Below, in pieces: positions 31,731-63,857 of a stretch of 64,000 nucleotides of DNA. Source of the DNA: Mizuhopecten yessoensis. Lineage: Eukaryota. Position 1 is the first letter of the stretch, and each line of letters begins with the position of its first letter. The notes under the pieces are model-generated. The model saw nothing but the letters and a program-made list of their open reading frames with translations. It was not told where the DNA came from and did not search any database. The stretch spans positions 1-64,000 of the forward strand of contig NW_018406841.1 in NCBI RefSeq assembly GCF_002113885.1. The letters run 5' to 3'. Both the position numbers and the translations under genes were made by a program.

Positions 31731-32173
31731 NNNNNNNNNNNNNNNNNNNNNNNNNNNNNNNNNNNNNNNNNNNNNNNNNNNNNNNNNNNNNNNNNNNNNN
31801 NNNNNNNNNNNNNNNNNNNNNNNNNNNNNNNNNNNNNNNNNNNNNNNNNNNNNNNNNNNNNNNNNNNNNNNNNNNNNNNNNNNNNNNNNNNNNNNNNNNN
31901 NNNNNNNNNNNNNNNNNNNNNNNNNNNNNNNNNNNNNNNNNNNNNNNNNNNNNNNNNNNNNNNNNNNNNNNNNNNNNNNNNNNNNNNNNNNNNNNNNNNN
32001 NNNNNNNNNNNNNNNNNNNNNNNNNNNNNNNNNNNNNNNNNNNNNNNNNNNNNNNNNNNNNNNNNNNNNNNNNNNNNNNNNNNNNNNNNNNNNNNNNNNN
32101 NNNNNNNNNNNNNNNNNNNNNNNNNNNNNNNNNNNNNNNNNNNNNNNNNNNNNNNNNNNNNNNNNNNNNNNNN
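31731..32173. other. Assembly gap (N run) flanked by a near-identical ~365-bp duplicate (31365-31730 = 32174-32545)
   Basis: Direct observation. Confidence 0.95.
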
Positions 32174-37029: not shown

Positions 37030-38534
37030 TCTGTCGACCATACACAACATGAACAGTGAAACCTCGATTAAATGCCACTCATTTCATTTGCCACCTCGTT
37101 TACTGCAAACATATTTCACATTTCCCTCAATCTATTGTCAAGCCCTTTTATAATGCCAAAACCTCTCTGGAATAATGGTGGCATTATAACGAGTTTTTGC
37201 TGTACATTAACTGACTAAATCTGTAATACACGAAAGAAGTTAGGGCTGACTAGGAATCAAAGTAACAATAATGTACAAACATGTACAAGTTTATATATAT
37301 TCTAAATACATTTTTGAAACAAATTACAATAAAGTCACAAATTGTTTGTAAAACTTTTCAGCAAACACACATTGCCAATTTAAATATTTATATTCATTCT
37401 AAAATTTCGTAATGAGTAACAAGCATTATCCATGCAATCCAATCAACAATGTTGAACTATTTTCATTGTTTCATTGTATTACTACGCTTCCTTTTACGTT
37501 ATCTGACACGCCATGTCTGTCCCTATGTAGAAATATTCGTTAAGTAACGTTATTCATAATCAATGTATGCATCATTTACAATAATTGATTCCACCTTTCG
37601 ATTAAACATTATTATTTTTACGTATTTCTTAGAAGAAAATGTTGTCCGATGTTATTTCATAAAGCAATACACTACTTACTTAAGAGATTCAAATACTTAC
37701 TATGAACATGATATATCCCCAAAACAGTCGTCTCATTTTTGTGATCTGATGAAACATTGTGCAGAAGTAATACACAAAACTTCACTTAGACCATTCATAT
37801 CCTATATATATATAAACCATGGTATAAAACAGAAACCACCATGGAATTTCGTTTGTCGGATGAAAGGATTTGGGGTGAACTTCTGGTGTACAGAATATGA
37901 ATATGTGGTATTTATGATTCCATCGCTGTATTGACGTACATCTGTCGAGTAGAGGTGTCGGCGTACAGGTTGGGAGGTTCCACCCGGGAGAGATCTAGAC
38001 TGTCATAATGGACAGGGTTTGGTGACGTCATGACGGCTTCAGTATACTCTGGCTGTTTCACGAGTGCAAGTCTTCTGCAAATATGATTGTCAAGCTTATT
38101 ACGGTTGTTGATATCGTTAAGTTTTACCTTGGTGGGCAAAAAGTCATTTACAGGCAAAATATATAGCACAAAAGTAAATAGATCAATTCTAAATGGTGCT
38201 ATGAAGGATAGCCTGTTAACGTCAAAGGAAATATGTGATAAGTAACATAATTCTGTACCATGTTACTTACTTTCTATAAAGGATAAAATGGACTACCATG
38301 GTTACAGTAATCAGTAGTGAGGTTACTACTAGAGGGACGACTACAGCACCTGGAAAATATACATATTGTTGTTATCTGTAACACAAATATTGGCTAAATT
38401 TGTTGCATAAAAAGTATACCACCTGAACTATGAGTTAGATCGACATGTTCAATCATTGTCCACAATAAGGAATCTCATTTATTTAACAAGTAACATAAAA
38501 AAAATATTTTAACTTTTATTAGCCAATTTTGTTT

Positions 38535-39992: not shown

Positions 39993-42900
39993 AAATCATA
40001 CATTTACGTTACGGTGAAGTACAATAAAAAAGTTACAACTCTTTTTGTATATTTATTATTTTTAATATTAGTATCGGACAGAAAACTATAAAAAGGAACA
40101 GCCAGAACTTCAGCCTACACACAAACTTCAAATGTTCAACTTCCGCCGATCAGCTGATATTGTTGAAACGAAAAATATATATCTTATATATATTTAAATA
40201 GTGCACCATTTATGATTTTTGTAATGTTTATAATTATTTCTCGCAACGACATTATCTCGGAGAAGGGGAGATAACTCTTCTCAGAAACGGTACTTTGCGT
40301 AGTAATATGATTTGTCATTGTGTATGAAATCAGCTGATCGACTTCACGTGAATCGTTGTATTTATAGTGTATTCATGGTCTAATGGCAGTTGTTTTCTAT
40401 AGGTAGATTCATGTACAGAACAAACATCAATAATGTAAATAAAGGTATCTGTATGAACCTGTGTTAGATATTGTAGTTAAAACCATAAAACAACTCGTTC
40501 ACAATATCAAACAAACGAGGAAGAAACAAACAAGATAGTAACGTACATGTATATCAGGCTATTGCTATTACGGGAAACGTGTTTCTGCTTTTCATTTAAA
40601 CTTTTTCAACACTGTTAATCGTTTACATAAATACGACTCACCTGCCGTTAGTGAGAGACAATATTCTGACATACTTCCACTGAGTCCATATTGCCATACA
40701 ACAGTAACTGTATCATTTGTCTGAACAGCGTTAATTATAGTGTTTCCAACAAGTAAGTGTTTAAAATAACACCTGAGAAAGCTGCTACTTGCGCTGATAT
40801 GATAATGCTGCTTCCACATCCAGACGGAGGATATAACGACTGGGCAGATCCAAAACCAACAGTAGTCATCGTTCCGCCGGAAAGTCCCGTCAGTGTCGCC
40901 ATACAGGAGCAGCTGATACTACCGCCATCTTTTCTGTACACAGACGATCCGTACGTGTCTATAACCACGTGTTCACCGATGGCATTAACATCTTCACACA
41001 TGTTCAGTACTGCAAAAAACAATATTAAATAACAATTTGTTAAAGATACCCGTGCCTCTGCCAAAAACTGTAACTATGCACTAGAAATCGACATTTTACC
41101 GGCAAGACTTTATCTATGATGAATCATTTCTAAAAGGAATATAACGACTTTACGTAAAAACAACAGAACAAATAATCAATAACGGTTTAATTTTAAAACT
41201 AAAAATTAGCGGAACTATAGACCGGGATTCGAACCATAAGACTCAACGAATATACCTCGGCCCAGTTGTACTTCAGTTATTTCCATGGAATATTTAAGTA
41301 TTATCGTAAAACGTGTTATTTACGCGGGCTGAAACTTTCACGATTTTGACCGATATTTGGAAAATTTTATTTAGACGAACTATAATTTCGCGATCTAGAC
41401 ATATGAAAGAACTACATTTTCGCGGTGTTTTAGCACAGAGACGGGACACTCGACATATAAAGTTTCAAATATACAAGGAAAGGCTTTTTGACAGCATATT
41501 GAGCACACCAAGAACGTGTATACTGTTAAAAACATCATCAACAAAACTATTAGATGGGATATAACCTATTATGTACATTTGTATATGAATCGCCACAACC
41601 ACATACTTACTATTTCATGACAACATAACGATTATGAAGTTTAAAATCGCGGCTAAATTTTACACTTATCATATTTTCTATAGATCATATTACCGCGACC
41701 ACGTTAATTATAGACCAACGAAATCGAAAATATATCATCCCCGCAGAAATATCCTAATATATGGTAACATATATTTATAAGACAGACATTCAGTGATCAA
41801 TTCTTAAAGTGTCTGCCTAGCGTTCTATATATTTGATGAACGTGACTCTAGATAAAGCATACAACCAACTATTAAGACCCTTTTAAGAGATGCAACACGA
41901 GTTACTTTCGGAGAAGAACCACAGCTATCAGCACGCCGGGGTTCTAACGCTGAAGAGAAACAAATATACCTGAGGACCTTACAATTATGTCTGATATACA
42001 CAATGGCCTAAAATCATACCTCTGGTAAGTCAGTTTTTCGTGAACTTATTTATTTATTATTAATTTGGTAAAGTCAGATATCGGTTAATGTATGTGACAG
42101 TAGAGTGAGGTATTGGTCAACTTATGTGTCGGTAAAGTTGGTATAAAACCAGGTTTTAGCACACTGTCGGTAAAACCATGTTTTACTGAAAAAGGCTAAT
42201 AGAAGAATAGTGTTTTAAACTCCTCTGTGAAGAAAAATCAATATAAGATAATATTACATTATAACGACGTCCTTATAAACAACATTTTATATTAATATAC
42301 CAACACACATACGTATAAATCAAACGGAAATGTCATATACTTTGAAACGACTTTGGAATGTCGTTCATCCCGAGTTCTACCAGTTTGATTTTGTTTGCAA
42401 AAACCTTTGAGAACGTATATTTTCGAAACCTTCTGTTGGGAAATTTAGGTAGAAATCAGTTATTACCGGTGGTTCCATCTGTAACGGCTTCAGAACAAAC
42501 AGTCCCAGCTGAATCTGTCGTAAATAAGCACACGATAAACGTTAAACAAGCAGATTTTCATTAACAAAACATTTAAGAAGCAAATAATGGATAAGAGTCA
42601 TCTCTCTTTTCATAAACTTCTTAAATTATATACCTCAAAGAGTAAACATTATAATAATAGCATTTATGTTTTTTTTTTGTATTCGTTAAAAATAGATTTT
42701 ATTTTAATTATACTAAAATTGGCTTCACAAAATTTTCATATCTTATTAAGCCATTGATTAACCATAATATATGGAAGTAATAGAGAGGGAGGAGAGATGG
42801 AAGGAAGGAAAGGAAGTAGGAAAGGGAAAAGGAGGACGGAGAGAAGAATTTTTATTAGAACCGGTGCTACAAATTACGTATTTCGAAAGAAAGAAATGGT

Positions 42901-43680: not shown

Positions 43681-46101
43681 TTTATATATATATATATGAC
43701 CAGGCCACCTGATTCATACAGCTTTTATAACCAGGCCAGATTCTCTGTAATGGAATACACTTACCTTTAAACAAATTCACCAATGTAGACACAAATACCA
43801 AATATCACAAGGTCATTTCGTCCTCTGTTGTTAACTGTAAATTAACCAGCACAAAGTGTCAAAATTTCTTATTTCGTCATTAATATAGGATAAGACTTAG
43901 GCGACCTACTTTGAACACTAATCAAGCAAATCAATACTTCGACTATTCGACCCAGACTCTTGGTTGAAACATGGCTATATTTGTATTTAATTTATAAACT
44001 GTTTACATTTCTGCGACTAATCCTTAAGAAGGCAGTCACTTAATCATCGGGCGACTTACGTTGTAAAAGAAAATGACAATTATAGTAAATGCTCAATTCA
44101 ATAAGCATGGTCGAGGTCTTCGGTATTTTTTTATTTTTTATTCTATTTGTAATATATTTTTGCGATTTTGTGTTGATATACATTACGCATTTACAAGTTA
44201 CAGTTGGACTTTTACTTTTATCTATTCTTCTGAATAAACCTCCAAAAATGACTGATTAATATTAGTGTTTTCTATATAGCACAGGTTCATCAACACCAAG
44301 ATATACATACAACCTAGGAGACTGGTTATGTCTTGCTAACCACCCATATATCCGTAGGGACGATGCTATTTAGGTTCAGGTAATGATTTAACGCCCATTT
44401 TCTAAATTGAAAATGAAAATGAACAAGGAAGTTTAATTATGTTCGCTTCGTATAGTCTACAATTTAAATATAGCACCAATGGGTTTTTTCAATCAAAAAC
44501 CGGTTTGCCGTCTGTCAACTGTCTTTAGGTCTATTTACTGTTCATACAGTGCCTTACCTAACTGTATTCAGAGCGTACCACATAGTGACATGTTATTAGC
44601 ATGTTTACATTCAACTTAGAATTGTAAAGGCGATCGGTAAAGTCACATTATAGAAGATATATGTGCTAGTCATAGGCTAATAGATTGTATTTGTCTTCTG
44701 CATAAAAAAATGTATGTATGAAATATGCATAGGCCATTAAAGTGTATTTGTCTGTTTAGCAAAAGATTTAGTGACAATACAAATGATGTACAACTCCTTT
44801 GCAAAAAGAGTATCTTAACTTAATCAGTGATGGATGATACGCAATCAGAAATATTTCTTAAATGATATAAGAAAACAAAGACTCGGTCACGGTATGTTAC
44901 CAGAAACATTGCTTGAGGTCTACCAACATCAATATTAGATGACATAATTTTTCTACATCCCTCTTTGTTGACTCATTATCACGTAGAGGAGGTCATTTGT
45001 GATATTGACTCTGTGTTTTTATTTTTAGAAACATCAGGTCAATATTCACTTCACGACGTCACCTTAATTTTATCGCCACAATGTTTTCTGCCAAATGCGG
45101 TACCTTTCTCGATACGATTTGCTTACCGTTTGTCTTCTTTTATGATAAATCGTCAAAATTTCATATCTGATATAACAATTAAGGTAGGCGTTTTATTTTG
45201 GTGAATATGTCGTTATATTGACGTGAGATGTGATACGGATCTTGATTTCGTCTTGGTGAATATCGTTTTCTCAGTATCATATAACCACACATTTAAAGTA
45301 CATGTCAATTGTGTAGAACGTTAACACTTAACACTTTTTAATGTAGAAAAAATTTATATGTATTCTCGTTGTTATAAAATGTGCATATCTGATATACTGA
45401 AAAGAGTGACTTTATTCTTCACAATACGTATGTAAGCACATGCAATATTAAAGATATTATCTAACACAATTTACACGGCAATACAGAAGGAAATAGAAAT
45501 ATGAGCTCCAAAACCAATTACACTCCACCCATGAAATCGCATTCATAACCTGTCTTTTTATAATGACCAGTAAACAGGCAATGTAATGCAACGTAAAGGA
45601 AAGTACAATCATCTCTACATAAGAATAGGAATACCTTGTATTATATCAATAATGAAGACAGTGCTCTGTTTAGACAGGAAAAAGTAAATACCTTTTAGTA
45701 AGAACGTTTGACAGGCAAACATGAATATATTTCTATAACATTTGTAGAAGGTGTCTTTGAATAAAATAATCAATCAGTCTTGGTAAAGTTGACGTGTATG
45801 TGATCACGGAAGTAAAACCGTGAATTTTTAAAGGAATTTCCGACCTTGGACAACTACGTTGACTCAAACATAAGGCCATTGGTTGGTGTCTGTCGCGAAT
45901 GAAGTGTTTACTCAATGCCCTGTAAGTTATAACTGGTCTGACCGGATGGGTAGGTTCTAAAATAAGATAAATACATATAGCTTTTATGTTTTCGTGGAAC
46001 ATTGAGTGTACAACAACATAAGCCTAATTTTTCAGCGCTGAACAGACCAGGAAGCTTCGGAATATAGGATTGTTACTCTCTGCCCTGCTAGAAAGGACAA
46101 A

Positions 46102-49100
46102 ATGATTGTATGGAACCTGGTCTTAGTGTTGATATTGATGAGTTTATTTAAAGGTAAGTGTGTTCTTTTTTCAAGAGGGAGAGTGCTATAATTGTATATA
46201 TGGATGGTGTATATCTGACATGATGCTATCGATGACTCTCAATACCTCGGTCTTGGGAGATCAAGAGGGCCTAGTAAGTTATAAGAACTTGTGCCCAATT
46301 CCTTTGACTGTGTAATGTCAACAAAGCATGTTTAAATGAGTCAATGACACTTATATTAAAGCAGTAAATACAAAAAGGAAGGGTTACGAGATCTCGTGAA
46401 AGTTTGGCAAAACTTTCAATAGACATTTTCTGTATGAAAGGTTACAGAAAAGTGTTAACGAATACAAAAAAAAGCATATATCAATACATACTTGCATAAA
46501 CTTGTTTCATATAAGTATTTCTTACCGAATATTTAGTCAGGCTCTATGCCATCGTAATTATCCAGCAATATTTATTATTTGTATTGATTGAGATAAGTTT
46601 TTTTCAACTGTCAATTTCACTGACATACTGGTCGGTAGAAAATGGAGGGTGGGGGTTGAGGGTTGGTTGGTATCAAATATCATATCAACCTCAATCAACC
46701 TACAATATTACAAAAGCGATGTGCAATAGACAATGCCTGGAATGATAGTACTGTATTATACCTCTGTATGCATGTATGTTCACGTGCTTACTTTAGCAGG
46801 TATATTAATGAAGTTTATATATCACATGGTAGCTTTCATCCTTGCGTGTTTGTTGGAACTTTTATGCAACAAAAATAATCAATATATTCCTTCTAATTAG
46901 ATAGGAACCCATTGTTAAGATATTACAAAAAAAATGTTTTATTGTTTATAGCAGGTACAGCCGACACTGTATGTTCTCAAGCTGCTACAGATGGAACTAC
47001 CGGTAAATATAATTATATTTATTTCTGTATATACATTAAAAATACCTTATAATAAGCTAAATTTGATCAGCATTTTACAAAACAAGTTCAATTTCTATAT
47101 CAAAATTTTAAAATTCATACTAAATCAGCCAGCAATGACAAGAAACCCAATACCACAATCATCGTTATGATGTAGTTGATGAGAGCGTTTAAATAACCTC
47201 GAATATGTATTCATAAGAAAGCATGGTTATATTTACATTCAGATGTTGACATTTTGTCTTCACAGTAACGATGTGTGAAGGTGGTAATGCCGTCGGTGAT
47301 CACGTGGTTATAGATACGTACAGATCGGCTGCGTACAGACAAGATGGCGGTAGTTTCAACTGTTTCTGTACGGTGACACTGACGGGACTACCCGATGGAA
47401 CGATGACAACTGTCGGATTTGGATCTGTCCCGTCGTTATATCCTCCGTCTGGTTGTGGAAGCAGCGTTATTATAACAGCGCAACAAGCAGCTTTCCAATC
47501 TAGTCAACCAAACATTCACATGTGTGCTGTAAAAAACAATACATTTAACGCTTTTCAGACAAACGATACATTTACTGTTGTATGGAAGTCTGGAGTCAGT
47601 GGAAGTACAGCAGGATATTGTCTTTTATTCATGGCTGGTAAGTCGTATTTTATGTCAACAACTTACCAAGTTTCTGAATTTTACGTAATATGCAGAGATT
47701 TATTTACTTGCAGTACGAACAGCAGAGGATAGAATTCATATCCACGCCTCGGTGTTTCATCATGATGTACATGTTTATCTCATGCAATATAGAAATACGA
47801 CATTAGTATATGGGCATTATCAGTAACAACAGATGCATTGGTTTTGTTTGCTGTACATTTTATAGAGGGTCCCAAACGAAGGATTATTGGTTGTGATGTT
47901 TCTACGAGGCTTACAGAGTTTATTTCACCTTTTGCAAAATAGCTGATCAGAGTAAAATAAACCTGATAATTAACAGTCACAAGTTTGAGGATTGTTTTCA
48001 AATTATAACTAGAAAATCTCATCTTTCTCTCTGGAATACATTTTTTCTTGCTTCCGAAAGGGGAAAATCGCCATGAAATATGATGTCACAATAAAAGAAG
48101 ACGTCGCAAAGTAGTGTTTCTTGACATCATAAGTAGATGATTGGCCAATAAAATAACGTCTACTGTTTACCGACTACTAGTGGCTAACCAAAACAGTTAA
48201 CTAACTCCCAGGTTTACTCAATGGGTCAAAAGTGAGGAACCCTATACCGGTTGTGGGAGAAATATCAATTTATATACCACGCAGTGTTTCATCGTTTTTG
48301 TTACGTGAAGCAGATAGTGCAAATTATTCATTGTATAAACCGGAAGTTATTCGAAGTGTGGTGTCGTAAGAATAAGTACAGAGATGTTCTTATCATGACA
48401 CCCTTTTGTTGAATCTCGACAGAATTACAATTACATTGAATTATATGTTATCATTGTTGAATATGTTTCAGTGTATATTGATTGTGTATAATGATTCTCC
48501 AGCGTTGTCCATTGATTAAGTGTGTTTTTCTGCAAACGTTATAGGCCCGGGGTCATCCTTGTCAACCAAATGTAATCCTGCCGTCAACACCACAACATCA
48601 CCAACATCTCCTAGTACAGCGCCATCAACAACAACTCCTAGTACAGCGCCATCAACAGCAACTCCTAGTGCAGCGCCATCAACAACAACTCCTAGTACAG
48701 TGCCATCAACAACAACTCCTAGAACAGCGCCATCAACAACGACTCCTAGAACAACAGCACCACCAACTAGTACAACGGTGATGGCGTCATTGATGACGAC
48801 ACCTAGTACAACAACTACAACCAATCCTACAACTACCATCACGTCTACTATTGGTGGCGGAACCAATGGTGGGGGAGCCACTACGTCGTCAGAGAAGCCT
48901 ACTATGAGTCCAGAGGCTACTACAATGGCGGATAAGATTAAAAACAAGAATTTAGACAGTAATTTTATTATTTTTTCAAGTATGTGAATGTATATTCTCC
49001 TATAGTATGCTGAATTATATGTTAGACTTTTGTTATATATTAGGGTTTTTTCGTCAGAGGCATTAGCACTGTTTTGGAATTTCCTTCGCATATTTGGGAT

Positions 49101-50994
49101 ATCCTACGTATACGCGTCATTTCATTCATACAGTGCAGAGTGAATGTTGAGCTGGTTTTGGTCTGTTTATAACACAGCTTTTATAAAATTCGAATTGATC
49201 TTTAGACAGGAACGAAGGATAGTACCTTCCATATAGCTGAATAGCTACTTTAGATGAAATCGTTAAACACAATTTGTTTTGTTTCAATTTAAGGAAATTA
49301 TACATGAAATCGCGAAAACACATAAAACACGGAACGAAATACACCCAATTTATAGAATATTATAAAATAGCCTCTACTTGATTAGTGTCCTATCCAAATT
49401 AACATTAAATTGCATTATCTAGGAATTATTTTTCGTTGATCAATCTCGGCTACATGCACCTCGCGGATTTACAAACGCTATTTTTAAGCTAAACGTAATG
49501 TAGATCAGGATAATATGCTACAATGATAAATCTTCATATGTTGTACGCGATCTCATAGTAACACATTTATTTCAGACTAACAAGAGCATTCGTGAAACAC
49601 CGCCAGAGGTATCTCTTGTTTACAATCAAAGCATAACTTTCCCTTTTACTTTCATGTATTTATATATTTAAATAAAAGTAAGGTAATAGGTTTACATAAA
49701 TTAACACCCTTGATACAACCAATACAGACAAACATATTTATATTTCTATGTACAATTGTTAAATGCATAATTACACAAGAAATACCTCTGTTAATAAATT
49801 TCAAGTATGACATACTTGGTATGTAAGTACTGATAGTCATTAAGTTCTCGTTGCTGTGCATGTATCTGTCTTTGTATCATTTCAGCTACGGTCATTATCG
49901 CAATAGCTGCAGGGGGCGTGGTCTTCCTTATAATCTGCATTGTCATTGCGGTCATGTGTTCAAGGTTTGTATTTCTAATACGGTAAATAGCTATAGGTTA
50001 ACAGGAACGGAATGGTATTAGTTTGTTTAAATTGTTATTAAACAAAGTCATCACATGCCATCAATAAAAAATCACATATATGTAAATATAACATTTAATT
50101 AACAAACTGTTTCTATGTTTTAAATGATAAAAGATAATAAGTGGACTTTTCAGGTTTTTAATACATGTAGATACATATTCTCAATGTGATCAAATCATTT
50201 TGACATTATTGTCCACAATAGTGAAAGATGTTGGTTGCAGGGCCTAGGCTCAATGACTTAGGGGATAGTATGGAACAGTAATCTGTGTTTTATGTCATGT
50301 TATGTAGAATAAAATAATTTAAATTTGGAATATGCTTTGATATAAACATCATTCTTCATAACTCTTTGTGACTAGAATGTTAATATAATTAAATTTAATA
50401 ATTGAAAATTTTTGCAAATGCATTTTAAAAGATTTTGGATTTCTCAAGTCTAATTCAATCACCAATCACATCGATATGTGCATTATATTTTTCAGAACAA
50501 AAAGAAAATCAAATGAACACAGGAAAACTGGAACTGCTGTAGCCCATAATGTCTTGTATGAAGCAACAAGAGCACATTCACCGGATGCAGCAACCAATCA
50601 TGTGGTGACCCCTAGCAGCGATATATACGCACAGGTCGAAAGGCATTCGAAGGTCGAAACAACGAATTCAAAAGAGCAGTCTCATGAGCCGGAACAGGAA
50701 ATAGGTCATGTGGCGACACCTAGTGGTGATATTTATGCACAGGTCGAAAAGCATTGGAAGGTCGAAACAGCGGTTTCTAAAAAGCGGTCTCATGAGCCGG
50801 AACAGGAAATAGAACATGTGACGACACCTGGTGGTGATATGTATGCACAAATCGAAAAGGATTCGAAGGTCAAAACAACGAAATCAACCAATCAGTCCCA
50901 TGAACCAGAAGAGGAAGTAGAAATTGTGATGACACCTAGAGGTGATATTTATTCACAAGATGGGAATAAGTCAGATGCTAGTGTGTATTTCTAA
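46102..50994 (+). CDS. Gene E (complete, ~494 aa): inverted receptor paralog with C/D-type ectodomain, long mucin stalk, distinct TM and repeated DIYAQV tail. Exons 46102-46153, 46955-47002, 47266-47637, 48545-48979, 49886-49964, 50496-50994
   Basis: The spliced frame is open (1485 nt). Signal MIVWNLVLVLILMSLFK; 6-Cys exon homologous to C/D; TM TVIIAIAAGGVVFLIICIVIAVMC followed by SRTKRK. The exon-4 donor position is uncertain and exon 2 has a NAGNAG acceptor (46952/46955). Confidence 0.85.
50599..50960 (+). repeat. 108-bp (36-aa) coding tandem repeat, 3 full units plus 1 partial, in the gene E tail
   Basis: Unit starts at 50599, 50707, 50815, 50923. Confidence 0.9.
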
Positions 50995-51717
50995 TGAAAT
51001 GTTCAAATGATGAGCTACTAAGGACACAAGCAAATTTAATCATGGTGATGGTTTTAAGTCAAGCTAACGTCAGTATATAAAGAGAAATGCATCTAGACCG
51101 CCCATCAATTAGACTTGCTCAAGATTTCTAGAGCTAAAGATTGATGGATACAATACTTGTCAGAGAAGATCATTTAACATTGAAAGAGAAGTATTCAGTG
51201 CCACAATAAAAAATACTTCATTAATACATGTAATATATATTCATTTACATATTCATTTCAATAGTCCACGAATAGAAACTGTCAAATGACAAACTGTGTT
51301 AAAACATAATGTCATTTCATCATTTCGCTTTTATAAAATTATATATAAATTTCTTTTGTGTAATTCTTCTTTTTTGTGCTGTAAATTCCTTATGATTGTT
51401 TCATAAATGTTTGTACTGTTATTTTAGATTATGCTATATTAGCATGTATTCTGTCAATTTTAAGTTTTTGCCATGTTGGCATCTATGTACATTAGACTGA
51501 AACGTCTCTTAAATTAATTTATATGCTGCAAGAGCTTTATGTTTGCATGACCTTTATTCTTTCCGTGCTATTTTACTTTTTATTCGACTATCTGCGATGC
51601 ATGCTACCTTTGTGATATTTTGTTGTTTCTGTTAATCTTGATTGTTATATATAGTCGTAAGAATAGCTCTTCTGAGCTAAAGTTGCATTGTTACAAACAC
51701 GACTCTAAATAAATATT

Positions 51718-51968
51718 CTTGTATCTTGTATGTTGTATGTTGTATGTTGTATGTTGTATGTTGTATCTTGTATGTTGTATTTTGTATCTTGTATGTTGTA
51801 TGTTGTATGTTGAATGTTGTATCTTGTATGTTGTATTTTGTATCTTGTATGTTGTATCATGTATGTTGTATCTTGTATGTTGTATGTTGTATGTTGTATC
51901 TTGTATGTTGTATGTTGTATGTTGTACCTTGTATATTGTATGTTGTATCTTGTATCTTGTATTTTGTA
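51718..51968. repeat. 7-bp microsatellite (TTGTATG/TTGTATC)n
   Basis: Directly visible; it explains the spurious Cys/Tyr ORFs at 51705-52079. Confidence 0.95.
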
Positions 51969-54549
51969 TATATATATATTAAGGCCTTGTCCCAATGCAC
52001 TCATGCTTTGAACTTCTTTATAGTATTGATTTTTGTTTCTATTAGTACAATTATTAATATCTTATTATCCGTACAATAATAAGAATGATCGGACGAACTA
52101 TTTTGTGATTAGAATGAAAATATTTTGATTATCTTAAGTTAGTGCTTATGTGTTGTATTAAAATATTCTTGAACCTATATATGTACATTGTACTTCTTAG
52201 TTTTTAGTGATGAAAATATCATGTAATATGTTCATAATATTGCCTACCTGTTAATATATGTTAATGATGACCTTGTATTACACATATAGAAATGTCAAAA
52301 TGAAAATAAAAACCCTGATTTGTTTTAATGTCAAATTGTTTCTGACACCTAATACCTAATAATATTTAAAAACAATACGCATGCAAAACAAGTGAAACAT
52401 TCAGCCCTTCGTTCTTCACATCTCCTGCATTTATTACTATCATTATGTCCATTTCAATACAAGAGACGGGAAGTGGGCGACAATTTTATGAAAGTGCTAA
52501 TTTAAATTTCAAATTAATTATTTAAATATAGCGCAAATTTCGGGTATAGTTTCCTTTAAAATTATTCGTTTTGGAACGTTTATAGTGTTCTGTAACGTAT
52601 GAAAATCGATAAAGTTGGTCCAGTCTAATTTGCTTACATATTAGATTTAATTTGCCTCAAGTAATATTAAGTTCAGTTAACCAGGTAAACTGTGATATTC
52701 GCATTTACAGACTTACTAATAAATACGATTTTTTTTTTTTATATGGGATATGACACAATTGCTCTAACCCATAAACCCGTATCAGCCCGCAAAACCCGTG
52801 TCACACCCCTTTTGGAACACTTCTAATTTTTCCCATCTACCACCAACAACGTCGTTGGGAAGCCTTGTTTACCAACAGTTAAACAATAACTGATGCTGAA
52901 AAACGGCGACAAATTGGGGAGCGAGCATTGGAGTCTCTCTGCCAATAGGATTCTTGAGTTAGAATATCTGATTGAGCAACAGAACACTAAAACCATTGTG
53001 CCGTCAGAGCTGTCTGTCGTCATCGGTACGATTCACGATGTGGCGGCAGAGGGAGCAGAGCCTAAAGCTCTCATCGTTACAGCTGCAGCAGTCGACACCT
53101 GCGGCTTTGTTTCAAGCATGAGGAACAAGAATACAGTCAGAATGACCGAGTCTAACGTGAGAAAATTTAAGGCATTTCCTTTGGTAACCAATGACACGTG
53201 GTATCCAGAAGCAATTCCAAAACAGGAATTAAATAATACTTGCAAGGTTTATCGTTTTTCAATGATTCAAAAGAAAAATAGATCATAAGATAGTAGATTT
53301 ATCCGTATTTTATTAGTAAGTATGAAATAAACAGAATAAACATGCCTTTTACCATATCACACCGAGTTTCAACCGGACACCGATATCAGTCCTCGTATCA
53401 TTTTCTTGATATTCATTTTCACAAAATGCAGACTAAACTACTTGATTTTTGTGCACAATCTGAATTACGGTTGGAGTTTAAGATTAAATTAGTTTTAATA
53501 AAGCAGATTCGTTTCATGTATGGCAATCCTCGATACTCCATGGGTTACGCTCACCCCTGGAATATGTCCTGACACAATCTAAGGGTCAATGTGCGCCACC
53601 TTGTGGACGAAACATATTCAAGGGGTGCAGAGAGCGAAAGTAAAAAATGTCATATAAAAATAACCGGGGGAAAAACCTGGAATCAATGTTGGCATTGAGT
53701 CTGTAAATGAAAATAATTGTTGTTTTTTAATCTGTTTGAGTAATCACAAAAAATAGTTTCTTACAAAAAACAATCTGTTGTTTCCCTAAATAAACATATT
53801 CATCCCCGAACTCTAAACTCAGACTATGCATTGTGTATATGAGAGTCACATTTGAGTCATAACGTCATTATCCAATTAAAAAGCGACTTTTTGTCCTTTA
53901 GAAATGTATTGATAACGTTGTTGATAACGACGATCAGTGAAAAGTTGTTTGATGTGTGCTTAACTGTATTTATAATACTAGTAGACGATGTCTTATTAGT
54001 AAGTAATATTAAGCTCACGAGTTCACATTACAAAGATATGTAATATGTATCTCATCAAATTGTTCAACTTTGGGGACGACATCTAATATTTGTATTGCAC
54101 TATATCTGCATCTGCAGATGCAACTATACTATCTATATGATACACTCATTGTGATTAGTGTTTTTTTTAAATTTATAGCAAATATTACCATTTAATTTTA
54201 AAATTCACAATTTTCATTCTTGATTACGAATATACATAAAATTCCACCGGATTATTTGCTACCCCAGATGTGTGTACTATGTATCACGTATTTTGTGACA
54301 ATATCACTTTTTCTTTTTAGCTTCGAAACAACTAAGTAGCGTTTCTTGTATGTTTATATAACACTGTTCCTTGGCAAATACACGTAAAAACAATAATATA
54401 GTGTTATATTTACATTTGCGCTGCAACCCACTATATAAAGATTACCAGCAGTAATCCATTTCATTTGGGTATGAAAGCAAAAACTCTTGTGACGTAGCAC
54501 GTGGTTTACATATCTCAAATATAGCAGTTGGCAGCTTACAGCCTCACGG

Positions 54550-56410: not shown

Positions 56411-59400
56411 TTATGATTCCATCGCTGTATTGACGAACATCTGTCCAGTAGAGGTGTCGGCGTACAGGTTGGGAGGTTCCACCCGGGAGAGATCTAGACT
56501 GTCATAATGGACAGGGTTTGGTGACGTCATGACGGCTTCAGTATACTCTGGCTGTTTCACGAGTGCAAGTCTTCTGCAAATATGATTTTCAAGCTTATTC
56601 CGGTTCTTGATATCGTAATGTTTTACCTCGGTGGGTAAAAAGTCTTCAAAAGGCAATGTAAATATCAAAATGTATATAGGAATTTGATCTCAAATCAGTT
56701 CAAATACAGAACTTGATAATGAAAATGATACGAAATTATTTAATTATTTTCGTCAATGTGTAGTTAATTTCAAAACAGATACCATTGAGAAAAAGTGTCA
56801 TAAATAGATCAAGTATCCATTCTAAATGGTGCTATGAAGGATAGCCTGTTAACGTCAAAGGAAATATGTGATAAGTAACATAATTCTGTACCATGCTACT
56901 TACTTTCTATAAAGGATAACATGGACTACCACGGTTACAGTAACCAGTAGTGAGGTAACTACTAGAGGGACGACTACAGCACCTGGAAAATATACATATT
57001 GTTGTTATCTGTAACACAAATATTGGCCAAATCTGTTGTATAAAAAGAATACCACCTGAACTATGAGTTAAATCGACATGTTTAATCATTGTCTACAAAA
57101 AAATGTTTTTTGTTTATTTAAAAAGTAACATGAAAGAAGTTATTTTGACTTGTATTGGCCACTTTTGTTTGCCCGCACATTAGCGCACCAGGTTCTTAAT
57201 GTAAACGGAAACCGGAGTACAAGGAGAAAACCCACGTGTTTGGGCAGGTGACCCCATACCTTTTCACGTCTGATCAGGGAATCTAACGCGGACCCTCTTT
57301 TCGACGGCTACTGATATTATTTATTAGAATATCATAAACCATACATAATGTTATATTTCTCGCCTAAAGCTGTTAATTTTCTCGCATCACAGACGAGAGA
57401 ATTATCCAAGTATTTGTTTGCAGAGAACAATATATAAAGAGACACAATGTGTTACAACGGAAAAAGCAGATTAATATTTCCCTGCTGTATCTCCAAGAGA
57501 ATAGAAGGCATATATATATAAACAAACCTCTAATTATATAGTGTCAAAAGTCCACTTGAAAAAATANCTTGGGGCCTGATGGTTAGATGTTTAGGTGGCA
57601 GAAGTTTCAAAAGTTTTATGTGTGGCTTGAGAAATATATATAGATGTGAAATGTATAAAAGAAAAAAAAATTAAGTCTGTTTTTGACTGGGGGAGTTTAT
57701 TAAGTGTGTAATTTGTTGTAAATGTTGGTCAATTTTTGGTGTCGAATTCAATACAAAATGGCGGCCCCCATATAAAAAAAGTTCAAATAGGTAGATTTTT
57801 AAAACTTCTTTTTTTACAGGTGTGTGAAATGACATTCTTCAAAATGATGTCAGGTGAACCAGTGTGGATAACTCCATTTAACCAGGACAGTGGTAAACGT
57901 TAACACTATCGTCTATGGAAAATCATTTGGTTCCGCGGTCCCTACACCCATCTTTAAAGCCCAAAAACAAAAGATTCAAATATCCCTACCTCCCTACCGT
58001 GACGTAACCCATATCTCGATGACAGAGCCACAGAGTGATCTCCCTTCCTCTTCCTTTTATGACGCCTGCTGCCTGCTGACGGCCTGGAGCTTGCACCATA
58101 TCAAAACTTTGTTTTGTCGGTTTGGTTTGAGTGTCAACTCAATTTATTGCGCAGAGTGTGTGCTTTATATCCATATGCCCTTATTACTATAATCATTTGT
58201 TGTTGAAAATTATTTTTGTGCCTTTTACGGCCGGTTATTTTACTCGACGTGTGCCGGTGGTGTGCCACGCGGTCCGCCATTATTGTGTGAAATTTTCCGA
58301 CCTCTGTTTATTTCAGTGACGGTTGTTTGTTTCGGCAAACGTTATTTATTTTAATCGTTTTCTGATTTATATTACGGGTGAAATTCTTTCTACGTTGCGT
58401 ACCTTGTACTATCGTATTTTATTATTTTTTCTCGTGTTTATCTGCTTGTAAACTTTGTTTGACGACAGACTTTCTTTCGGGATTGTCTGTGTCTACCAGG
58501 ATTAGTGACGCGCAGCTCACTAATCCCGGCATCAATACTGGTCAAGCTAACCTTCCCGGTCAGTTACCCGGACCCGGTCCTATTAGGTCCGGCCCGGAGT
58601 TTCATTCGACCGGGAACCTTGGGGGTTCCCCCCAGGTGTTGGGTTTGCTGGACATGGGGCCGGGTTCCGGCCTCCGTTTTCCCCTGGCTTAGGGTATACG
58701 GGTGCCTGCGGGCAACCATCCTTGGGCCACCCTAACCAGCCTGCGGATGGTTATGGGTTGCGGCAGCATCCCGGCAGTTATGGGCTTAGCCCGTACATGT
58801 CCGGCTTTCCACCTGGAGGGAGTGGCGGTCCATCTTCGCCCTTTGGGCAAGATGGCCAGCCCCAGTCTCAAGCAGGCCAGTTTGGCCAGTTCTGGGGTCA
58901 CTCCCAACCCGCGGGACCTTTCCCTTATCCTCCGGGATATGGGTTTAGCCCCATGGCTTTTCAGTCATGGAATCCTTGGGGTTTGGTTTCTCCCTCACGG
59001 AGACGTGTTAGCAGTTTTGTTGAACCCCCCCCCCCCCCCCCCAAATGGTCTGCTACTTCGGGGGCCTTATCGGCCGGTCCTAAGAAGGTGTGTCGGACCT
59101 TCAGGACTTCTGCCTCTCAGGCAGACTGGTTGGTCTCTGGGTCCAAGGGTAGGGTTTTGGCTACTAAGATTAAACCTACAGCCACGGTCGTTAGGCGCAC
59201 TGCACCTAAACGCCGTTATGGGAAGCCTTCTCTCTGGCTGGCCCATTTCCTCCGCCCGAGGCTTTTGGTCTGGCTGGTGTGGAGGCTATGGCAGAGGACG
59301 ATGATGTTGTTCATTTTTCTCCTGGTTGCTCGGATATAGACACTGGTCTTTCCGAGTCGTCTGTTGACGGTCCTCAGGAGGGCTTGCCCTCTGAGGAGGA

Positions 59401-62400
59401 TGTCCAGGATGAGGGTGACCCTGAGGATGCTGAGGTTTAGGCCCAGCATGTGTTGTCCGGTATGCGGGGCCTTAGGGCCGACGTTTCCCGGATTGGGGAG
59501 GAGGTTTGCCCACCACCTTCGGCGTCATCTGTCCCCGAGTCCACCACCCTATTGGGTTCTTAGGTGGCTCCTTGGGTGTCCGCTCGGTCGGACCGCTCTC
59601 TGCCAGAAGGCATTATTGTGTCTTCATCTCTGGCCACCGCTCAGTCTCGGGTTTTAGAGAAGAATTCTTCTTCAACCCGTAGTCCTGGGTATGCTGGGTT
59701 GCAGCTCAGTGTTGGCGATTTGTCGGAGGTGCACGCCACTGACTATGCCACACATGATGGCCTGCTTGATCCTCAACCAGCTAAGCTGAAATCGAGGGAA
59801 CTTGCAGCCTGGCCCGGTAAATCGGTGGACCAAGTGGTGTTCTGTCCCAAAGAACACCACAAAATGGAGATGCGTCTCTCCATCCAGATGCTGTCTTATA
59901 TAGACTACCTGACGGTTTGTCTATATAGGGTATCCGACTTGCCTGAGGGTCGGCCAACATCCAGGACAGAGTGGCCTCTGCCCTGAACGGGGCATTGAGA
60001 GCGCTGGCAGCTTTACAGGTGTCATCGCTCGTCAATGTCTTGTTGGCTAGGCGGTTTTCAGTTTTGAAAAAACGTCCAGTCGATGAGCCTTACCGCTCCA
60101 GATTGTTGACTGCCCCCTTCTCAGGGTCCACTCTTTTGGAAGGGGCCTTCCTTCTGTTCAGAAGGATTTGAAGGAGGACTCGGTCGCCTCTGCACTTCTG
60201 GTGAAGAGGATTCAGGCTGAGAAGGCCAGTACCTCGCAGGGGTCAGCGCCTCCTAAGAAGAAGGCTAAACCTTCGGCTTCGCAGTCCTCTGCGCAGCCCA
60301 AGTATAAGCCTCCCTTCAAGGGCAACAAATGGAAGGGTAAGAAGGGTAAGAACCCTCCTGGGGGTAAGAAGAAGGGTTCCTGACTCTCTTCTTCCCTCCT
60401 TGGTCGTGTCAGACGACGAGTTTGGCCGGGAGGACTGCAGTCCTCTCGGCTCAAGCTTAGGTCCTTCTCCCGCAGGATTAGACTTCGGGTCAGCAGACGG
60501 TTCTCTTGCCTGGCAAGGTCTCGATCTGCCTCGACCAGATCTTCCTGTGGGGGGTCGTATTTCCGCTTTCCTTCCAGAGTGGAAGGAAATTACGAAGATG
60601 CATGGGCCTTGTCTGTGGTCAAGGAGGGGTTAGGGGTTAGGCATCCGCTAGTGCGGTATCCGCGTCAGAGCCAATCTTTTTTCCTCCACCGGGGGATCCG
60701 GAAAAGGCTTTGGCTTTCCAGGAGAAAGTAAGGACCATGCTTACCAAGGGCGCGGTCGAGGAGGTTCCTATGTCGGTATGCACTCCCGGGTTCTACTCCA
60801 GAATGTTTCTGGTTCGGAAGAAGTCCGGGTCGTGGCGTCCCATCATAGATCTAAGTGCCTTCAACAAGCACGTAGATTCTCCTCACTTCAAGATGGAGAC
60901 TCCTCGGGGTATTATCGCCTCCGTGAGAGAGGGAATGTGGGCGACTTCAGTAGATCTAAAGGACGCCTACTGCCACTTCCCCATCAAAAACTCGGCACGG
61001 AAGTACCTCCGTTTTACTTGCAACGGAAAGGTCTTCCATTTCCGGGCCATGCCGTTCGGGCTCACAACTGCACCTTTGGTTTTCACTAAGCTGCTGCAGG
61101 TGGTCGTGGGATTCCTGCACTCTCGAGGAATAGATGTTCACATCTATTTCGACGACTCCCTCATGCTCCACCTAGTGAGAGAGTCTCCGGTTCAGGTCAC
61201 CCGGTTGGTTCTGAAACTCTTACTCAAGGTCGGCTTCATTCCTTCCAGAGAAAAGTCGGAGGTTTCCCCATCTCAGGATTTTGTTTTCCTGGGGAACCGT
61301 TTCAATACGGTTCAGGGCATCGCCCTTCCACCGATGGAGAAGTTCGAGAAGGCAAGGGCTTTTGCTCTGACCTGCATCGGCCGGTCTCAAGTCCAGGTAC
61401 GTTGGTTTCTCAGTTTTCTCAACGCCCTGGCCGATGTGGTCCCCTTAGGGAGACTTCACATCAGGCCTCTCCAGATGTTTCTCCTTGTCAACTGGGTCCC
61501 TTCTTCAAGGGATTGGGAAGCCTGGGTTCCTCTGAACAAGTCGGTCAAGAAGTTCGCACGCTGGTGGACTCATCAGGACAATGTGCTCCGAGGGGTTCCT
61601 TTGTCCAAGCCGGTTCCCACTATGACCCTGTACACGGAAATGCAGTTGACAATTTGCGTCAAGCATCTACCAGGCAGGTTGAATGTTCTGGCGGATACTC
61701 TTTCCAGACGCCGCCAGCCGGTGTTGACAGAGTGGCAACTGAATCCCTCGATTTTCGAGGGAATTTATCAGGTGTGTGACAGGCCTCACATAGACCTGTT
61801 CGCCACTTCACTGAACAATCAGTTGCCAACGTTTGTCTCTCCGGTTCCAGATCCAAGGGCTTGGGCCGTGGACGCTCTGTCTCTGGATTGGGAGGGAATG
61901 CATGCATATGCATTCCCGCCCTTCAACCTGGTGGGCAGGGTGCTGCAGAAGTTTCGGGGGCATCAGTGTTCACTCCTCCTGATAGCGCCCCTGTTGCCGA
62001 GGCAGCCTTGGTTTCCGGAGCTTTTGTCACTTCTGGTGGAAGAGCCCCTGGCTCTTCCTTCCAGAGCGAACCTCCTTCGCCAGCCTCGGTCCAGGCAATG
62101 CACTCTCGTCCGGAGATCCTCCACCGTCACGCTTGGAAGCTATCTCAGGAGGCCTCGCTCAGGCGGGCTTTTCTAGGGACGTGTCAGATCGCATCGCTCG
62201 ATCAATTAGGTCTTCCTCATCTGCCGTCTACCAGTCCCGATGGAAGATATACTGTGATTGGTGTGTCGGCAGGAAGGTTGATCCATCAAGGCTACTGTCC
62301 AGGTGATTGCGGACTTCCTTCTTTGGCTGTTTAGGGACCGCTGTCTTGCCCCTGGCACTATCGCTGGTTATCGCACGGCCATTGCTAGTGTTCATTCTGT

Positions 62401-63857
62401 TCATGGTAGGTCGGAGGTAGGCTCGTCCTCCTCTCCTTCTGCCTTGATTAGGGGGTTTGGGTTGGACAGGCCTAGGTGCTCGAATCGTTGATGCGAGCAC
62501 CTTATGATCCTTTAGCGTCTGCCTCCTCGCCCAATCCTATTAAGATTCCGTCTTTGACTGCCTTCGTTGGGTCTGAGGAACGGGATAGGTTGCTCTGTTC
62601 CTGTCGGCCGCTTATGTTTTACCTCGATAAAACCGGGGGGGGGGGGGGGGGCGTTTCCTAGATCTCGTCTGTTTTTGCCCATTAGGCTGGGTCAGCAGAA
62701 TATCTCCTCTAAGTCAGTGTCTAGATGGATCTGTCGGGTCATCAAGTACGGTTACGACCACTCGGGTGATCAGGTTCGGGCGTTGTATAAGGTGAGAGCT
62801 CATGAGATCAGGGCTCTTGATGCGTCATGGGCCCTCCTCAATGGGCCCCCCTTTCAGGAGGTCATGTCCGCGGCTTTCTGGCGCGGACAGACTACCTTCA
62901 CGGATTTTTATCTCCGGTCCTTGGCTTCTCATTCTGATGGATTGTATTCCCTTGGGCCGGTGGTGGTTGCACAGTCTGTGGCTGTTCCTCCACAGTAATT
63001 CAGTGATTTTAAACAGTATGCTATCAGGCACCACGATGGTACACCTGCTCGATTCACGGGGAGGTTTTCCATTTATTTATTTTTTCAATTACTTTCGGGG
63101 CTTATTTAGGGGGGTTCCTTGAACCTTTTCCCTACCTTGAGCATGTCTCTAGTTTGTTCCGTCAGCCTGGTCTGCCTGGATTCGTAGCCTCCACTACGGT
63201 AAGACGAATTCGCATACTAAAGTTATGGTAATTATTACTGAAATTAAATTGAGGTTTTAGAAGTAAAACCAAATTTCATGATGTAATACCTACCATAACT
63301 TTATTGAGTCCATCCCTGTATTCCTCCCCTTGCCTCCTCATCCCGGCTGCCTTTAGGCTCCATAAAAGGGGAAGGGAGATCACTCCGTGGCTCTGTCATC
63401 GAGATATGGGTTACCTCACGGTAGGGAGGTAGGGATATTTGAATATTTTGTTTTTGGGCTACAAAGATGGGTGTAGGTATTGTATATGCATACTAAAGTT
63501 ATGGTAAGTATTACATCATGAAAATTGGTTTTACTTCAAAAACCTCAAGTTTATTTAATAGCTATGAATTGAAATACATACTTAATGGATAACATTGCTG
63601 TAAATCGTTTTGTTGAGCGCACTTTTGTCCTAATGTTGTCGATCCAGAATTAGTGCTGTTGTATGTGGTTGCATCCCTTGACTGAGTGGTTGTCATCCTT
63701 GACTGGGTGGTTATCTCTCTTGACTGAGTGATTGTCTCCCTTGACGGCGTGGCTGTCTCTTTAGACTGAGTGGCTGTTGTCCTAGATTGACTGGCAGTCG
63801 TTGTCTCCCTTGGACTGGAAATTGAGACACATTTTGTGGACAACGAAGACCCCGGAC
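56411..63857 (-). CDS. Gene F (5'-partial): close paralog of gene D. Stalk exon 63857-63582, TM exon 56982-56904, tail exon 56573-56411; a DIRS element lies in the intron
   Basis: Exon lengths 276/79/163 are identical to gene D, frames are open and splice sites canonical. Upstream exons lie beyond the window. Confidence 0.8.
57170..57295 (-). mobile_element. Degenerate SINE copy in gene F intron (shared with gene D)
   Basis: ggaaaccggagtacaaggagaaaacccacgtg...ggcaggtgacccc. Confidence 0.65.
58505..60383 (+). pseudogene. DIRS ORF1 (gag-like), fragmented by frameshifts; Pro/Gly/Gln-rich N-part and Lys-rich C-terminus
   Basis: Overlapping broken ORFs upstream of RT, ending in KYKPPFKGNKWKGKKGK. 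Assigned by position, not by motif. Confidence 0.55.
60710..62176 (+). CDS. DIRS ORF2: reverse transcriptase + truncated RNase H + Dam-like DNA adenine methyltransferase domain
   Basis: RT motifs FYSRMFLVRKK, WRPIIDL, DLKDAY, MPFGLTTAP, YFDD. RNase H tail HLPGRLNVLADTLSR, with the N-terminal DAS/GWG part apparently deleted after LYTE. Methyltransferase motifs IDLFAT..N..LP.F and YAFPPF. Confidence 0.92.
   Translation: MAFQEKVRTMLTKGAVEEVPMSVCTPGFYSRMFLVRKKSGSWRPIIDLSAFNKHVDSPHFKMETPRGIIASVREGMWATSVDLKDAYCHFPIKNSARKYLRFTCNGKVFHFRAMPFGLTTAPLVFTKLLQVVVGFLHSRGIDVHIYFDDSLMLHLVRESPVQVTRLVLKLLLKVGFIPSREKSEVSPSQDFVFLGNRFNTVQGIALPPMEKFEKARAFALTCIGRSQVQVRWFLSFLNALADVVPLGRLHIRPLQMFLLVNWVPSSRDWEAWVPLNKSVKKFARWWTHQDNVLRGVPLSKPVPTMTLYTEMQLTICVKHLPGRLNVLADTLSRRRQPVLTEWQLNPSIFEGIYQVCDRPHIDLFATSLNNQLPTFVSPVPDPRAWAVDALSLDWEGMHAYAFPPFNLVGRVLQKFRGHQCSLLLIAPLLPRQPWFPELLSLLVEEPLALPSRANLLRQPRSRQCTLVRRSSTVTLGSYLRRPRSGGLF
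62200..62998 (+). pseudogene. DIRS ORF3 tyrosine recombinase remnants (internally deleted, frameshifted)
   Basis: N-terminal ADFLLWLF..LAPGTIAGYRTAI and the C-terminal catalytic region RAHEIRA...AAFWRGQTTFTDFYLR (HxxR, W, Y). Confidence 0.85.

Follow-up and report, generated by a model that had tools for sequence, protein, structure and literature searches.

Among the closest described counterparts of the tail analysed here are receptors with inhibitory motifs of the immunoreceptor tyrosine-based type (ITIMs), including PECAM-1, SIRP-alpha, the Siglecs and the bivalve CgNCAM1 (PMC11841013), which carry copies of Y-x-x-V/I tens of residues apart in a disordered tail, have fast-evolving ectodomains and are encoded in tandem gene clusters. 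For the oyster ITIM receptor, signalling via SHIP2 has been demonstrated experimentally (PMC11841013), and in vertebrates the Ala at position +1 from the phosphotyrosine (pY) matters for SHP1 recruitment (PMC8631942). Human SLAMF1/CD150, a single-pass receptor with several cytoplasmic tyrosine motifs, contains a switch motif of the immunoreceptor tyrosine-based type (ITSM) with the sequence T-I-Y-A-Q-V-Q-K-P, and a SLAM peptide with T-I-pY-A-Q-V-Q-K binds an SH2 adaptor with a dissociation constant (KD) of 131 nM (PMC3514216; the sequence is also given in PMC8204385). Tandemly amplified tyrosine cassettes in variable copy number are also found in Helicobacter pylori CagA, an injected bacterial effector whose EPIYA-B motif is printed as EPIYAQVA (PMC4412286). 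In the literature on ITIMs in scallops we found nothing specific. Here, we describe gene E of the scallop Mizuhopecten yessoensis, which lies in a 64,000-nucleotide stretch (C3514:1-64000, hereafter the window) and encodes a predicted single-pass membrane protein with four tandem copies of a tyrosine cassette in its tail. Sequence comparisons confirmed that the cassette is real, coding, conserved and amplified in a lineage-specific manner, within a receptor family found only in scallops.

A tandem cassette array in the last coding exon of gene E

Positions 50496-50994 of the window are the last coding exon (exon 6 of 6) of gene E; two independent annotations include this exon. The gene is an exact match to OWF48499.1 (KP79_PYT06804, hypothetical, 476 aa; labelled P0010), RefSeq lists it as XP_021357437.1 under the name "cell wall protein DAN4-like" (488 aa; P0015), and the translation of exon 6 is identical to the C-terminus of both models. 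Base 50496 lies directly behind a ttttcAG acceptor and supplies the missing base of a split Arg codon, and the frame from 50497 is open up to the TAA at 50992-50994, the remaining two frames being stop-rich. Within this exon, Tandem Repeats Finder (TRF) detected a 108-bp (36-codon) in-frame repeat present in 3.3 copies (81% matches, 0% indels, score 445). The four cassettes read T-P-x-[G/S]-D-[I/M]-Y-[A/S]-Q-x and follow each other at intervals of exactly 36 residues, a regularity that stems from the tandem amplification of a single 36-codon unit; having one duplication history, they are not independent events. Their core can be written as a linear motif of ~15 residues, T-P-x-G-D-hydrophobic-Y-A-Q-V-x-K. 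An initial annotation, made from the sequence alone, had given the position of the array, the four decapeptides and the S-V-Y-F end of the protein, all of which are correct, with the 108-bp unit recovered by TRF inside the frame that runs to the TAA.

The product has the layout of a type I single-pass protein, with a signal peptide and a hydrophobic transmembrane (TM) stretch of ~25 residues followed by a cytosolic basic R-T-K-R-K. In the full-length AlphaFold2 (AF2) model of a near-identical gene E paralog, a leader helix (residues 2-19) precedes a sandwich and a disordered stalk, the TM helix spans residues 262-293, and the tail has a predicted local distance difference test (pLDDT) score of only 26-36 and lacks secondary structure. 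Given the topology signals and the paralog model, the repeat is predicted to sit in a disordered cytoplasmic tail. That the exon is coding and forms such a tail, as initially annotated, is borne out by the two public models and by the TM and stop-transfer sequences upstream.

Conservation of the cassette across scallop tails

The cassette tyrosines are retained in the orthologs from Ylistrum and Argopecten, and the cassette is also carried by a second subfamily, typified by genes on contig C875 and including a Pecten maximus member, the ectodomain of which is just 24-34% identical to that of the gene E group. This conservation in orthologs and paralogs argues that the cassettes are more than chance, and it runs opposite to the loss of tyrosines that the initial annotation had named as the observation that would speak against it. 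For a closer view, 17 family cassettes were drawn from stored records by a pattern requiring [G/S]-D-x-Y, so that the Tyr, the Asp at -2 and the Gly/Ser at -3 are fixed by construction. Among the free positions, Ala at +1 is found in 15 of the 17 cassettes and V/I/L at +3 in 16, while Lys at +5, Thr at -6 and Pro at -5 each occur in 13; the conserved block spans -9 to +5. The T-P upstream of the tyrosine, which had been pointed out for gene E, is thus a feature of 13/17 cassettes in the family.

It is conceivable that T-P is itself the working site, with proline-directed Ser/Thr phosphorylation docking WW, Pin1, FHA or 14-3-3-type readers, or that the 15-residue block binds a scallop-specific partner, the Tyr being structural rather than phosphorylated. 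The frequent retention of T-P and a conserved block longer than an SH2 footprint are in line with this idea, but T-P is less well conserved than Tyr, Asp -2 and Ala +1 (Tyr and Asp -2 being required by the collecting pattern), and the first cassette of C875-type tails has the Pro replaced and the Y-A-Q-V core kept. We regard this explanation as improbable.

A further tyrosine, absent from the initial annotation, lies close to the membrane, 22 residues into the gene E tail, in the sequence H-N-x-L-Y, an N-x-x-Y pattern of the phosphotyrosine-binding (PTB) domain type. It is kept in gene E, P0009, P0001, P0008, P0006, P0021, L004 and L005, that is, in almost all tails of both subfamilies.

Relation to known tyrosine motifs

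The cassettes were compared with the consensus sequences [I/V/L/S]-x-Y-x-x-[I/V/L] for the ITIM, T-x-Y-x-x-[V/I] for the ITSM and E-P-I-Y-A for EPIYA. None of the four gene E cassettes is a strict ITIM, as had been noted initially, with Asp at -2 in 4/4 and V, V, I and D at +3. They are not ITSMs either, the -2 position being Asp instead of Thr; the downstream Y-A-Q-V does match the SLAM ITSM. This stretch is identical in gene E cassettes 1 and 2 and in SLAMF1, and the likeness extends to Y-A-Q-V-Q-K-P in C875-type scallop paralogs. On sequence, the closest literal match to the gene E motif is therefore the human SLAM ITSM rather than CagA EPIYA. Both are found among several tyrosine motifs in the cytoplasmic tails of single-pass receptors, but the scallop proteins differ in the Asp at -2 and in having a predicted CUB-like instead of an Ig ectodomain, with no detectable homology. 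Because there is no other similarity to SLAM, convergence or chance is the preferred reading of this likeness.

The cassettes had initially been called EPIYA-like. The CagA B motif does contain the shared I-Y-A-Q-V, and tandemly repeated cassettes are a feature of both proteins; the match, however, is limited to these five residues, E-P is replaced by [G/S]-D in a motif that reads [G/S]-D-[I/M]-Y-[A/S], and gene E is a spliced six-exon scallop gene encoding a host receptor rather than a bacterial effector. The likeness is thus an analogy at best. A relationship of the tail to bacterial EPIYA repeats, or a role as the host counterpart that they mimic, is highly improbable: no CagA or other bacterial protein was among the credible matches when the tail was compared by a full HMMER search with 1.84 billion representative sequences, and the family is confined to scallops. 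Homology to CagA is in effect refuted by the five-residue limit, the missing E-P and this distribution.

With ITIM receptors, gene E shares the spacing of Y-x-x-V/I copies, the disordered tail, the fast-evolving ectodomain and the location in a tandem gene cluster, and its sister paralogs hold strict ITIMs. It is unlike them in that its cassettes fail the -2 rule, and recruitment of SHP or SHIP would be a putative property of its tail. A preference of the SHP2-type SH2 domains for the cassettes, as proposed initially, holds for positions +1 and +3 but not for -2, which would be hydrophobic, and the fourth copy has Asp at +3. The SH2 domain of Csk reportedly prefers pY-[T/A/S]-[K/R/Q/N]-[M/I/V/R], and pY-A-Q-V fits this preference at +1, +2 and +3. 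The Csk-binding transmembrane adaptor Cbp/PAG is a comparable case, but is almost without an ectodomain. CDCP1 and DCBLD1/2 are CUB-domain receptors with multi-tyrosine tails, and CED-1/Draper/MEGF10 combine NPxY with YxxL. Like the scallop protein, these receptors have an adhesive or CUB-type ectodomain (predicted in the scallop case), a single TM segment and repeated tail tyrosines. Having N-x-x-Y near the membrane and Y-x-x-aliphatic further out recalls the arrangement in Draper; the kinds of motif are not the same (DCBLD has YxxP, Draper NPxY), and Pfam searches detected no sequence similarity to the scallop family.

At the C-terminus, V-Y-F-COOH of gene E fits the class II PDZ ligand pattern suggested initially. 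The V-x-hydrophobic pattern is common to the orthologs, but the sequence is not, as these end in V-L-Y and V-H-L (Ylistrum and Argopecten). The C-terminus of C875-type tails is T-x-V and thus resembles class I ligands.

Candidate function of the cassettes

We consider it moderately probable that the cassettes act as phosphotyrosine docking sites for SH2 proteins in an ITIM/ITSM-like tail. Binding of a ligand to the ectodomain would lead to phosphorylation of the cassette tyrosines, which stand in a Src/Abl-type substrate context, an acidic -2, aliphatic -1 and Ala +1 being suited to kinases of this type. Each pY-A-Q-V could then dock SH2 proteins, whether Csk-like, phosphatases of the SHP/SHIP type or a SAP-like adaptor, as ITIM and ITSM tails do, and the regular 36-residue spacing might permit two-site binding by tandem-SH2 proteins with higher avidity. 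This proposal builds on the observed gene structure, topology signals, repeat, conservation and constraint of the motif, and copy-number differences between species. The context appears immunoreceptor-like: the tails of distant paralogs join the same cassette with strict ITIM sites, and between neighbouring paralogs the ectodomain evolves fast (omega 0.95) with the TM-and-tail part nearly identical. The scallop genome (988 Mb in 82,659 contigs) contains at least 43 matches to SH2-domain exons, including a tandem pair 2 kb apart. We view the gene E tail as a non-canonical variant of an ITIM/ITSM-kind tail and as a putative docking site.

Several observations weigh against docking. The Asp at -2 in every cassette breaks both the ITIM (I/V/L/S) and the ITSM (T) consensus and leaves the preferences of SHP-type N-SH2 domains and SAP unsatisfied, and cassette 4 is without a hydrophobic residue at +3. 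The conserved block exceeds the typical SH2 footprint, so that another reader is possible, and Y-x-x-hydrophobic is the AP-2 sorting consensus as well. The CUB assignment of the predicted ectodomain fold rests on a Z-score of ~8, near background, without support at the sequence level. As for constraint, the lower pN/pS of core codons than of the linker (0.27 vs 0.61, with similar pS), computed across the Ylistrum unit and units 1-3 of gene E, is summed over six non-independent pairs. Finally, the tails of gene E and its recent paralog differ by 13 nonsynonymous and 2 synonymous changes (omega ~1.8, from small counts), which gives no signal of purifying selection within the coding sequence (CDS).

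The last of these numbers would also be expected if the array had expanded neutrally in a disordered tail, unit likeness reflecting shared ancestry and copy number being without functional meaning. The omega of ~1-1.8 between the two recent paralog tails, that of 0.61 for the linker and the ease with which repeats expand in disordered regions, illustrated by a second repeat in the stalk exon, all agree with such drift. Nevertheless, the units are old (synonymous divergence, dS, of 0.33-0.57) yet have kept their core, the same core is kept in the C875-type subfamily despite its distant ectodomain, and constraint is stronger on the core than on the linker. Omega is 0.26-0.34 between gene E units and the Ylistrum unit and 0.37-0.66 from unit to unit within gene E. 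Furthermore, the tail CDS of gene E and the neighbouring paralog is less diverged than the flanking intron and 3' non-coding DNA (15/496, 3.0%, vs 80/1261, 6.4%; Fisher P = 0.005), and none of the 13 residue differences between these tails falls on a Tyr or at -2 to +3 of cassettes 1-3. We therefore give neutral expansion little credence.

A sorting function has more in its favour, although we still judge it unlikely. A mucin-like scavenger or uptake receptor would then be internalised through AP-2/clathrin or sent to lysosomes by means of unphosphorylated Y-x-x-hydrophobic and the proximal N-x-x-Y, and additional copies would speed up internalisation. Three of the four cassettes (1-3, with V/I at +3) fit Y-x-x-[V/I], as a pattern match only, in a disordered tail that also has the conserved N-x-x-Y, and endocytic receptors with CUB domains exist, for example cubilin, itself among the fold matches of the ectodomain. 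Binding to mu2 needs just the Tyr and a bulky residue at +3, L/I/M/F being preferred over V. These needs do not explain why Ala +1, Asp -2, Gly -3, Lys +5 and T-P are so strongly conserved, and the strict ITIM strings in paralog tails likewise speak against sorting.

If the cassettes are docking sites for SH2 proteins, gene E would represent a lineage-specific invertebrate counterpart of ITIM/ITSM receptors with a non-canonical acidic -2, the family would offer a natural series of 1, 2 and 4 cassettes in which to ask how motif number sets signal strength, and the regulation of immunity or cell contact could be approached in a bivalve that is farmed. Should the cassettes serve ordinary sorting, or have no function, the array is simply another repeat in a disordered tail. 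A bolder scenario, which we put forward tentatively and hold to be doubtful, is that scallops evolved their own checkpoint-like receptor family, with a CUB-like sensor on a mucin stalk and a G-D-hydrophobic-Y-A-Q-V(-Q-K-P) motif that converged on the SLAM ITSM. The gain would be set by repeated cassette amplification (from two to four, and in a separate, 99%-identical duplication in a paralog), while the ligand domain diversifies and gene conversion homogenises the tails of neighbouring genes.

Amplification history and mosaic evolution of the tail

Cassette number differs between species and between paralogs. The tails contain two cassettes in Ylistrum (one full unit and a terminal partial one) and in Argopecten (a degenerate first unit and a terminal unit), and four in both Mizuhopecten paralogs (three full units and a terminal unit). 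Gene E cassette 4 groups with the terminal unit of Ylistrum. From unit to unit within gene E, dS is 0.33-0.57, lower than the 0.65-0.81 between these units and the Ylistrum unit; for the ectodomain exon, dS between Mizuhopecten and Ylistrum is 0.66-0.73. Since divergence among units is below that between species, the increase from one full unit to three took place in the Mizuhopecten lineage after its split from Ylistrum; the event is old, and older than the present near-identity of the paralog tails.

An independent duplication was found in a C875 paralog (L004:1523-1722, ~506.6 kb), where a separate 96-bp repeat of 2.1 copies, 99% identical, duplicates a G-D-V-Y-A-V-V cassette. Judged by this identity, the duplication is very young and unrelated to the gene E array. 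The same tail has two strict ITIM strings and the terminus T-G-V. With the gene E array and this duplication, the sequences indicate that cassette number was altered at least twice within the family. Tuning of signal strength by copy number within the species, as initially suggested, found no support: no copy-number polymorphism was seen in the single haplotype-like contig available for comparison, which has the same number as its parent gene.

Gene E (45825-52709) and its downstream paralog (C3514:70170-77112; L006, L003) form a mosaic. They are ~83% identical in the 5' flank and ~71% identical in the ectodomain-stalk region including introns, and just upstream of ~49.85 kb they are 18-20% diverged. 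Beyond that point identity rises to 94-99% across the TM exon, tail and 3' region, with divergences of 1.2% in the TM exon, 6.4% in intron 5, 3.0% in the tail CDS and 6.3% in the 3' region. The ectodomain exons of the two neighbours have a dS of 0.20 at the omega of 0.95 given above. This pattern suggests gene conversion or exchange of a TM-and-tail module together with rapid change of the ligand-facing domain, a mosaic common in immune-type receptor clusters, although no proof of an immune role.

Architecture and gene structure

The exons were checked one by one against P0010 and P0015 (Table 1). Together they comprise 1467 nt, that is, 488 codons and a stop, equal to the length of P0015, and every intron has GT-AG borders. 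In the KP79 model the first 12 codons are missing; the complete leader is a normal signal peptide. Evidence for expression comes from the Argopecten ortholog, for which a 1416-nt Logan contig (SRR19746227; run type unstated) is intronless and contains a complete open reading frame (ORF) of 348 aa including the tail. The spliced tail of this ortholog appears to be expressed, since the length and intronless structure of the contig fit a transcript.

The AF2 model of ectodomain exon 3, built from a ten-sequence alignment, is all-beta with a pLDDT of 80.4. In an exhaustive VIA-align comparison, the CUB domains of Kremen, spermadhesin, MASP-1/3 and C1s were the best matches (Z 8.0-8.6 over 99-116 residues at 2.7-3.5 A), the method itself warning that a Z of ~8 can be background for best matches. 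CUB entries dominate the top 23 matches, and many further CUBs follow down to Z 7. Foldseek against the PDB was less informative, with weak, mixed jelly-roll matches (TM-score 0.2-0.4), and the CUB profile PF00431 was not matched: the ectodomain exon has no Pfam family at E <= 1, and none of nine family members exceeded the threshold. Because a Z near 8 can be background, the ectodomain is predicted to be CUB-like at the level of the fold only.

The stalk exon 4 contains a 27-bp repeat of 5.9 copies (48596-48753, 92% matches by TRF), which amounts to ~37 Thr/Pro-rich residues that are extra relative to paralog P0009; stalk length therefore also varies by repeat number. In all likelihood, low-complexity similarity of the Thr/Ser stalk is all that underlies the RefSeq names given to P0015, P0009 and P0021 ("cell wall protein DAN4-like", "endochitinase A-like" and "let-653-like"). 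Pfam searches found no chitinase or other enzyme domain in nine family members, and the public names "cell wall protein DAN4-like" and "endochitinase A-like" are corrected here as misleading. For the cassette itself, Pfam DUF7609 was tried and rejected: three proteins matched it below threshold, scoring 14.6-20.9 bits where 27 are required, and a search of the scallop genome with it was empty, with control genomes silent too.

Table 1. Exons, motifs and repeat array of gene E in window coordinates
Feature	Position	Strand	Basis or remark
Exon 1: initiation codon plus signal peptide (17 residues)	46102..46153	+	Upstream in-frame Met and hydrophobic leader; P0015 starts here; GTAAGT donor; N-terminal helix in paralog AF2 model
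Exon 2: start of mature ectodomain, first conserved Cys	46952..47002	+	Exact match to P0010 residues 6-22; AG acceptor, GTAAAT donor
Exon 3: predicted CUB-like beta-sandwich ectodomain	47266..47637	+	Exact match to P0010 residues 22-147; fold from AF2 model
Exon 4: Thr/Pro/Ser mucin-like stalk	48545..48958	+	Exact match to P0010 residues 147-284; TRF; disordered in paralog model
Exon 5: transmembrane helix	49886..49964	+	Exact match to P0010 residues 286-311; hydrophobic stretch, then basic R-T-K-R-K
Exon 6: entire cytoplasmic tail (166 aa) and TAA stop	50496..50994	+	Split-codon acceptor, open frame, match to public models
Membrane-proximal N-x-x-Y (N-V-L-Y)	50548..50559	+	Family-wide H-N-x-L-Y
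Tandem repeat array, 36-codon unit, 3.3 copies	50599..50957	+	TRF
Cassette 1, TPSSDIYAQV (Tyr codon 50626-50628)	50608..50637	+	Translation
Cassette 2, TPSGDIYAQV (Tyr codon 50734-50736)	50716..50745	+	Translation
Cassette 3, TPGGDMYAQI, Met at -1 and Ile at +3 (Tyr codon 50842-50844)	50824..50853	+	Translation
Cassette 4, TPRGDIYSQD, degenerate, Ser at +1 and Asp at +3 (Tyr codon 50950-50952)	50932..50961	+	Translation; ancestral terminal unit
C-terminal S-V-Y-F	50980..50991	+	Translation; orthologs share V-x-hydrophobic only

Family distribution and neighbouring loci

The HMMER search with the tail produced 8 matches, the credible ones all from scallops; four of the 8 are repeat or low-complexity artefacts (granulin repeats, a TPR, a coiled coil and a bacterial beta-propeller-like repeat). 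Word-indexed searches with the full-length ortholog, the tail region and a family profile recovered Pectinidae only, namely M. yessoensis, Ylistrum balloti, Argopecten irradians and Pecten maximus. In the scallop genome, the ectodomain has about nine occurrences, mostly in the C3514 cluster, with minus-strand paralogs near 1.3, 13.6, 21.9, 41.0 and 63.9 kb of the window. Besides gene E, this type of tail is shared by the neighbouring gene 24.6 kb downstream (XP_021357444.1, P0009), by a 1.9-kb contig resembling an alternative haplotype of that gene, and by two distant genes of contig C875. Other tyrosines match the strict ITIM consensus in the distant paralogs L004, L005, P0008, P0006 and P0021.

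Further cluster members of the P0012 and P0020 type have a different, short tail with one V-H-Y-D-S-L-type site of ITIM consensus, encoded on the minus strand at 9900-10055, 37915-38076 and 56414-56575. At 40637-41004, also on the minus strand, the ectodomain exon of another member is split over two frames with a TAA between them and is thus probably a pseudogene or an assembly frameshift.

The window is AT-rich (~33% GC) eukaryotic DNA that contains introns; runs of N occur at 382, 31731-32173 and 57567. A block of ~4.8 kb (58300-63100) with 53-60% GC stands out from this background inside an intron of a neighbouring minus-strand paralog. Rfam had no match in the block, and a 488-aa ORF at 60710-62176 matches the reverse transcriptase profile RVT_1 (E = 9e-19), which identifies it as a retroelement insertion. 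Lastly, a (TTGTATG)n microsatellite of ~36 copies lies at 51719-51969, ~0.7 kb 3' of the gene E stop.

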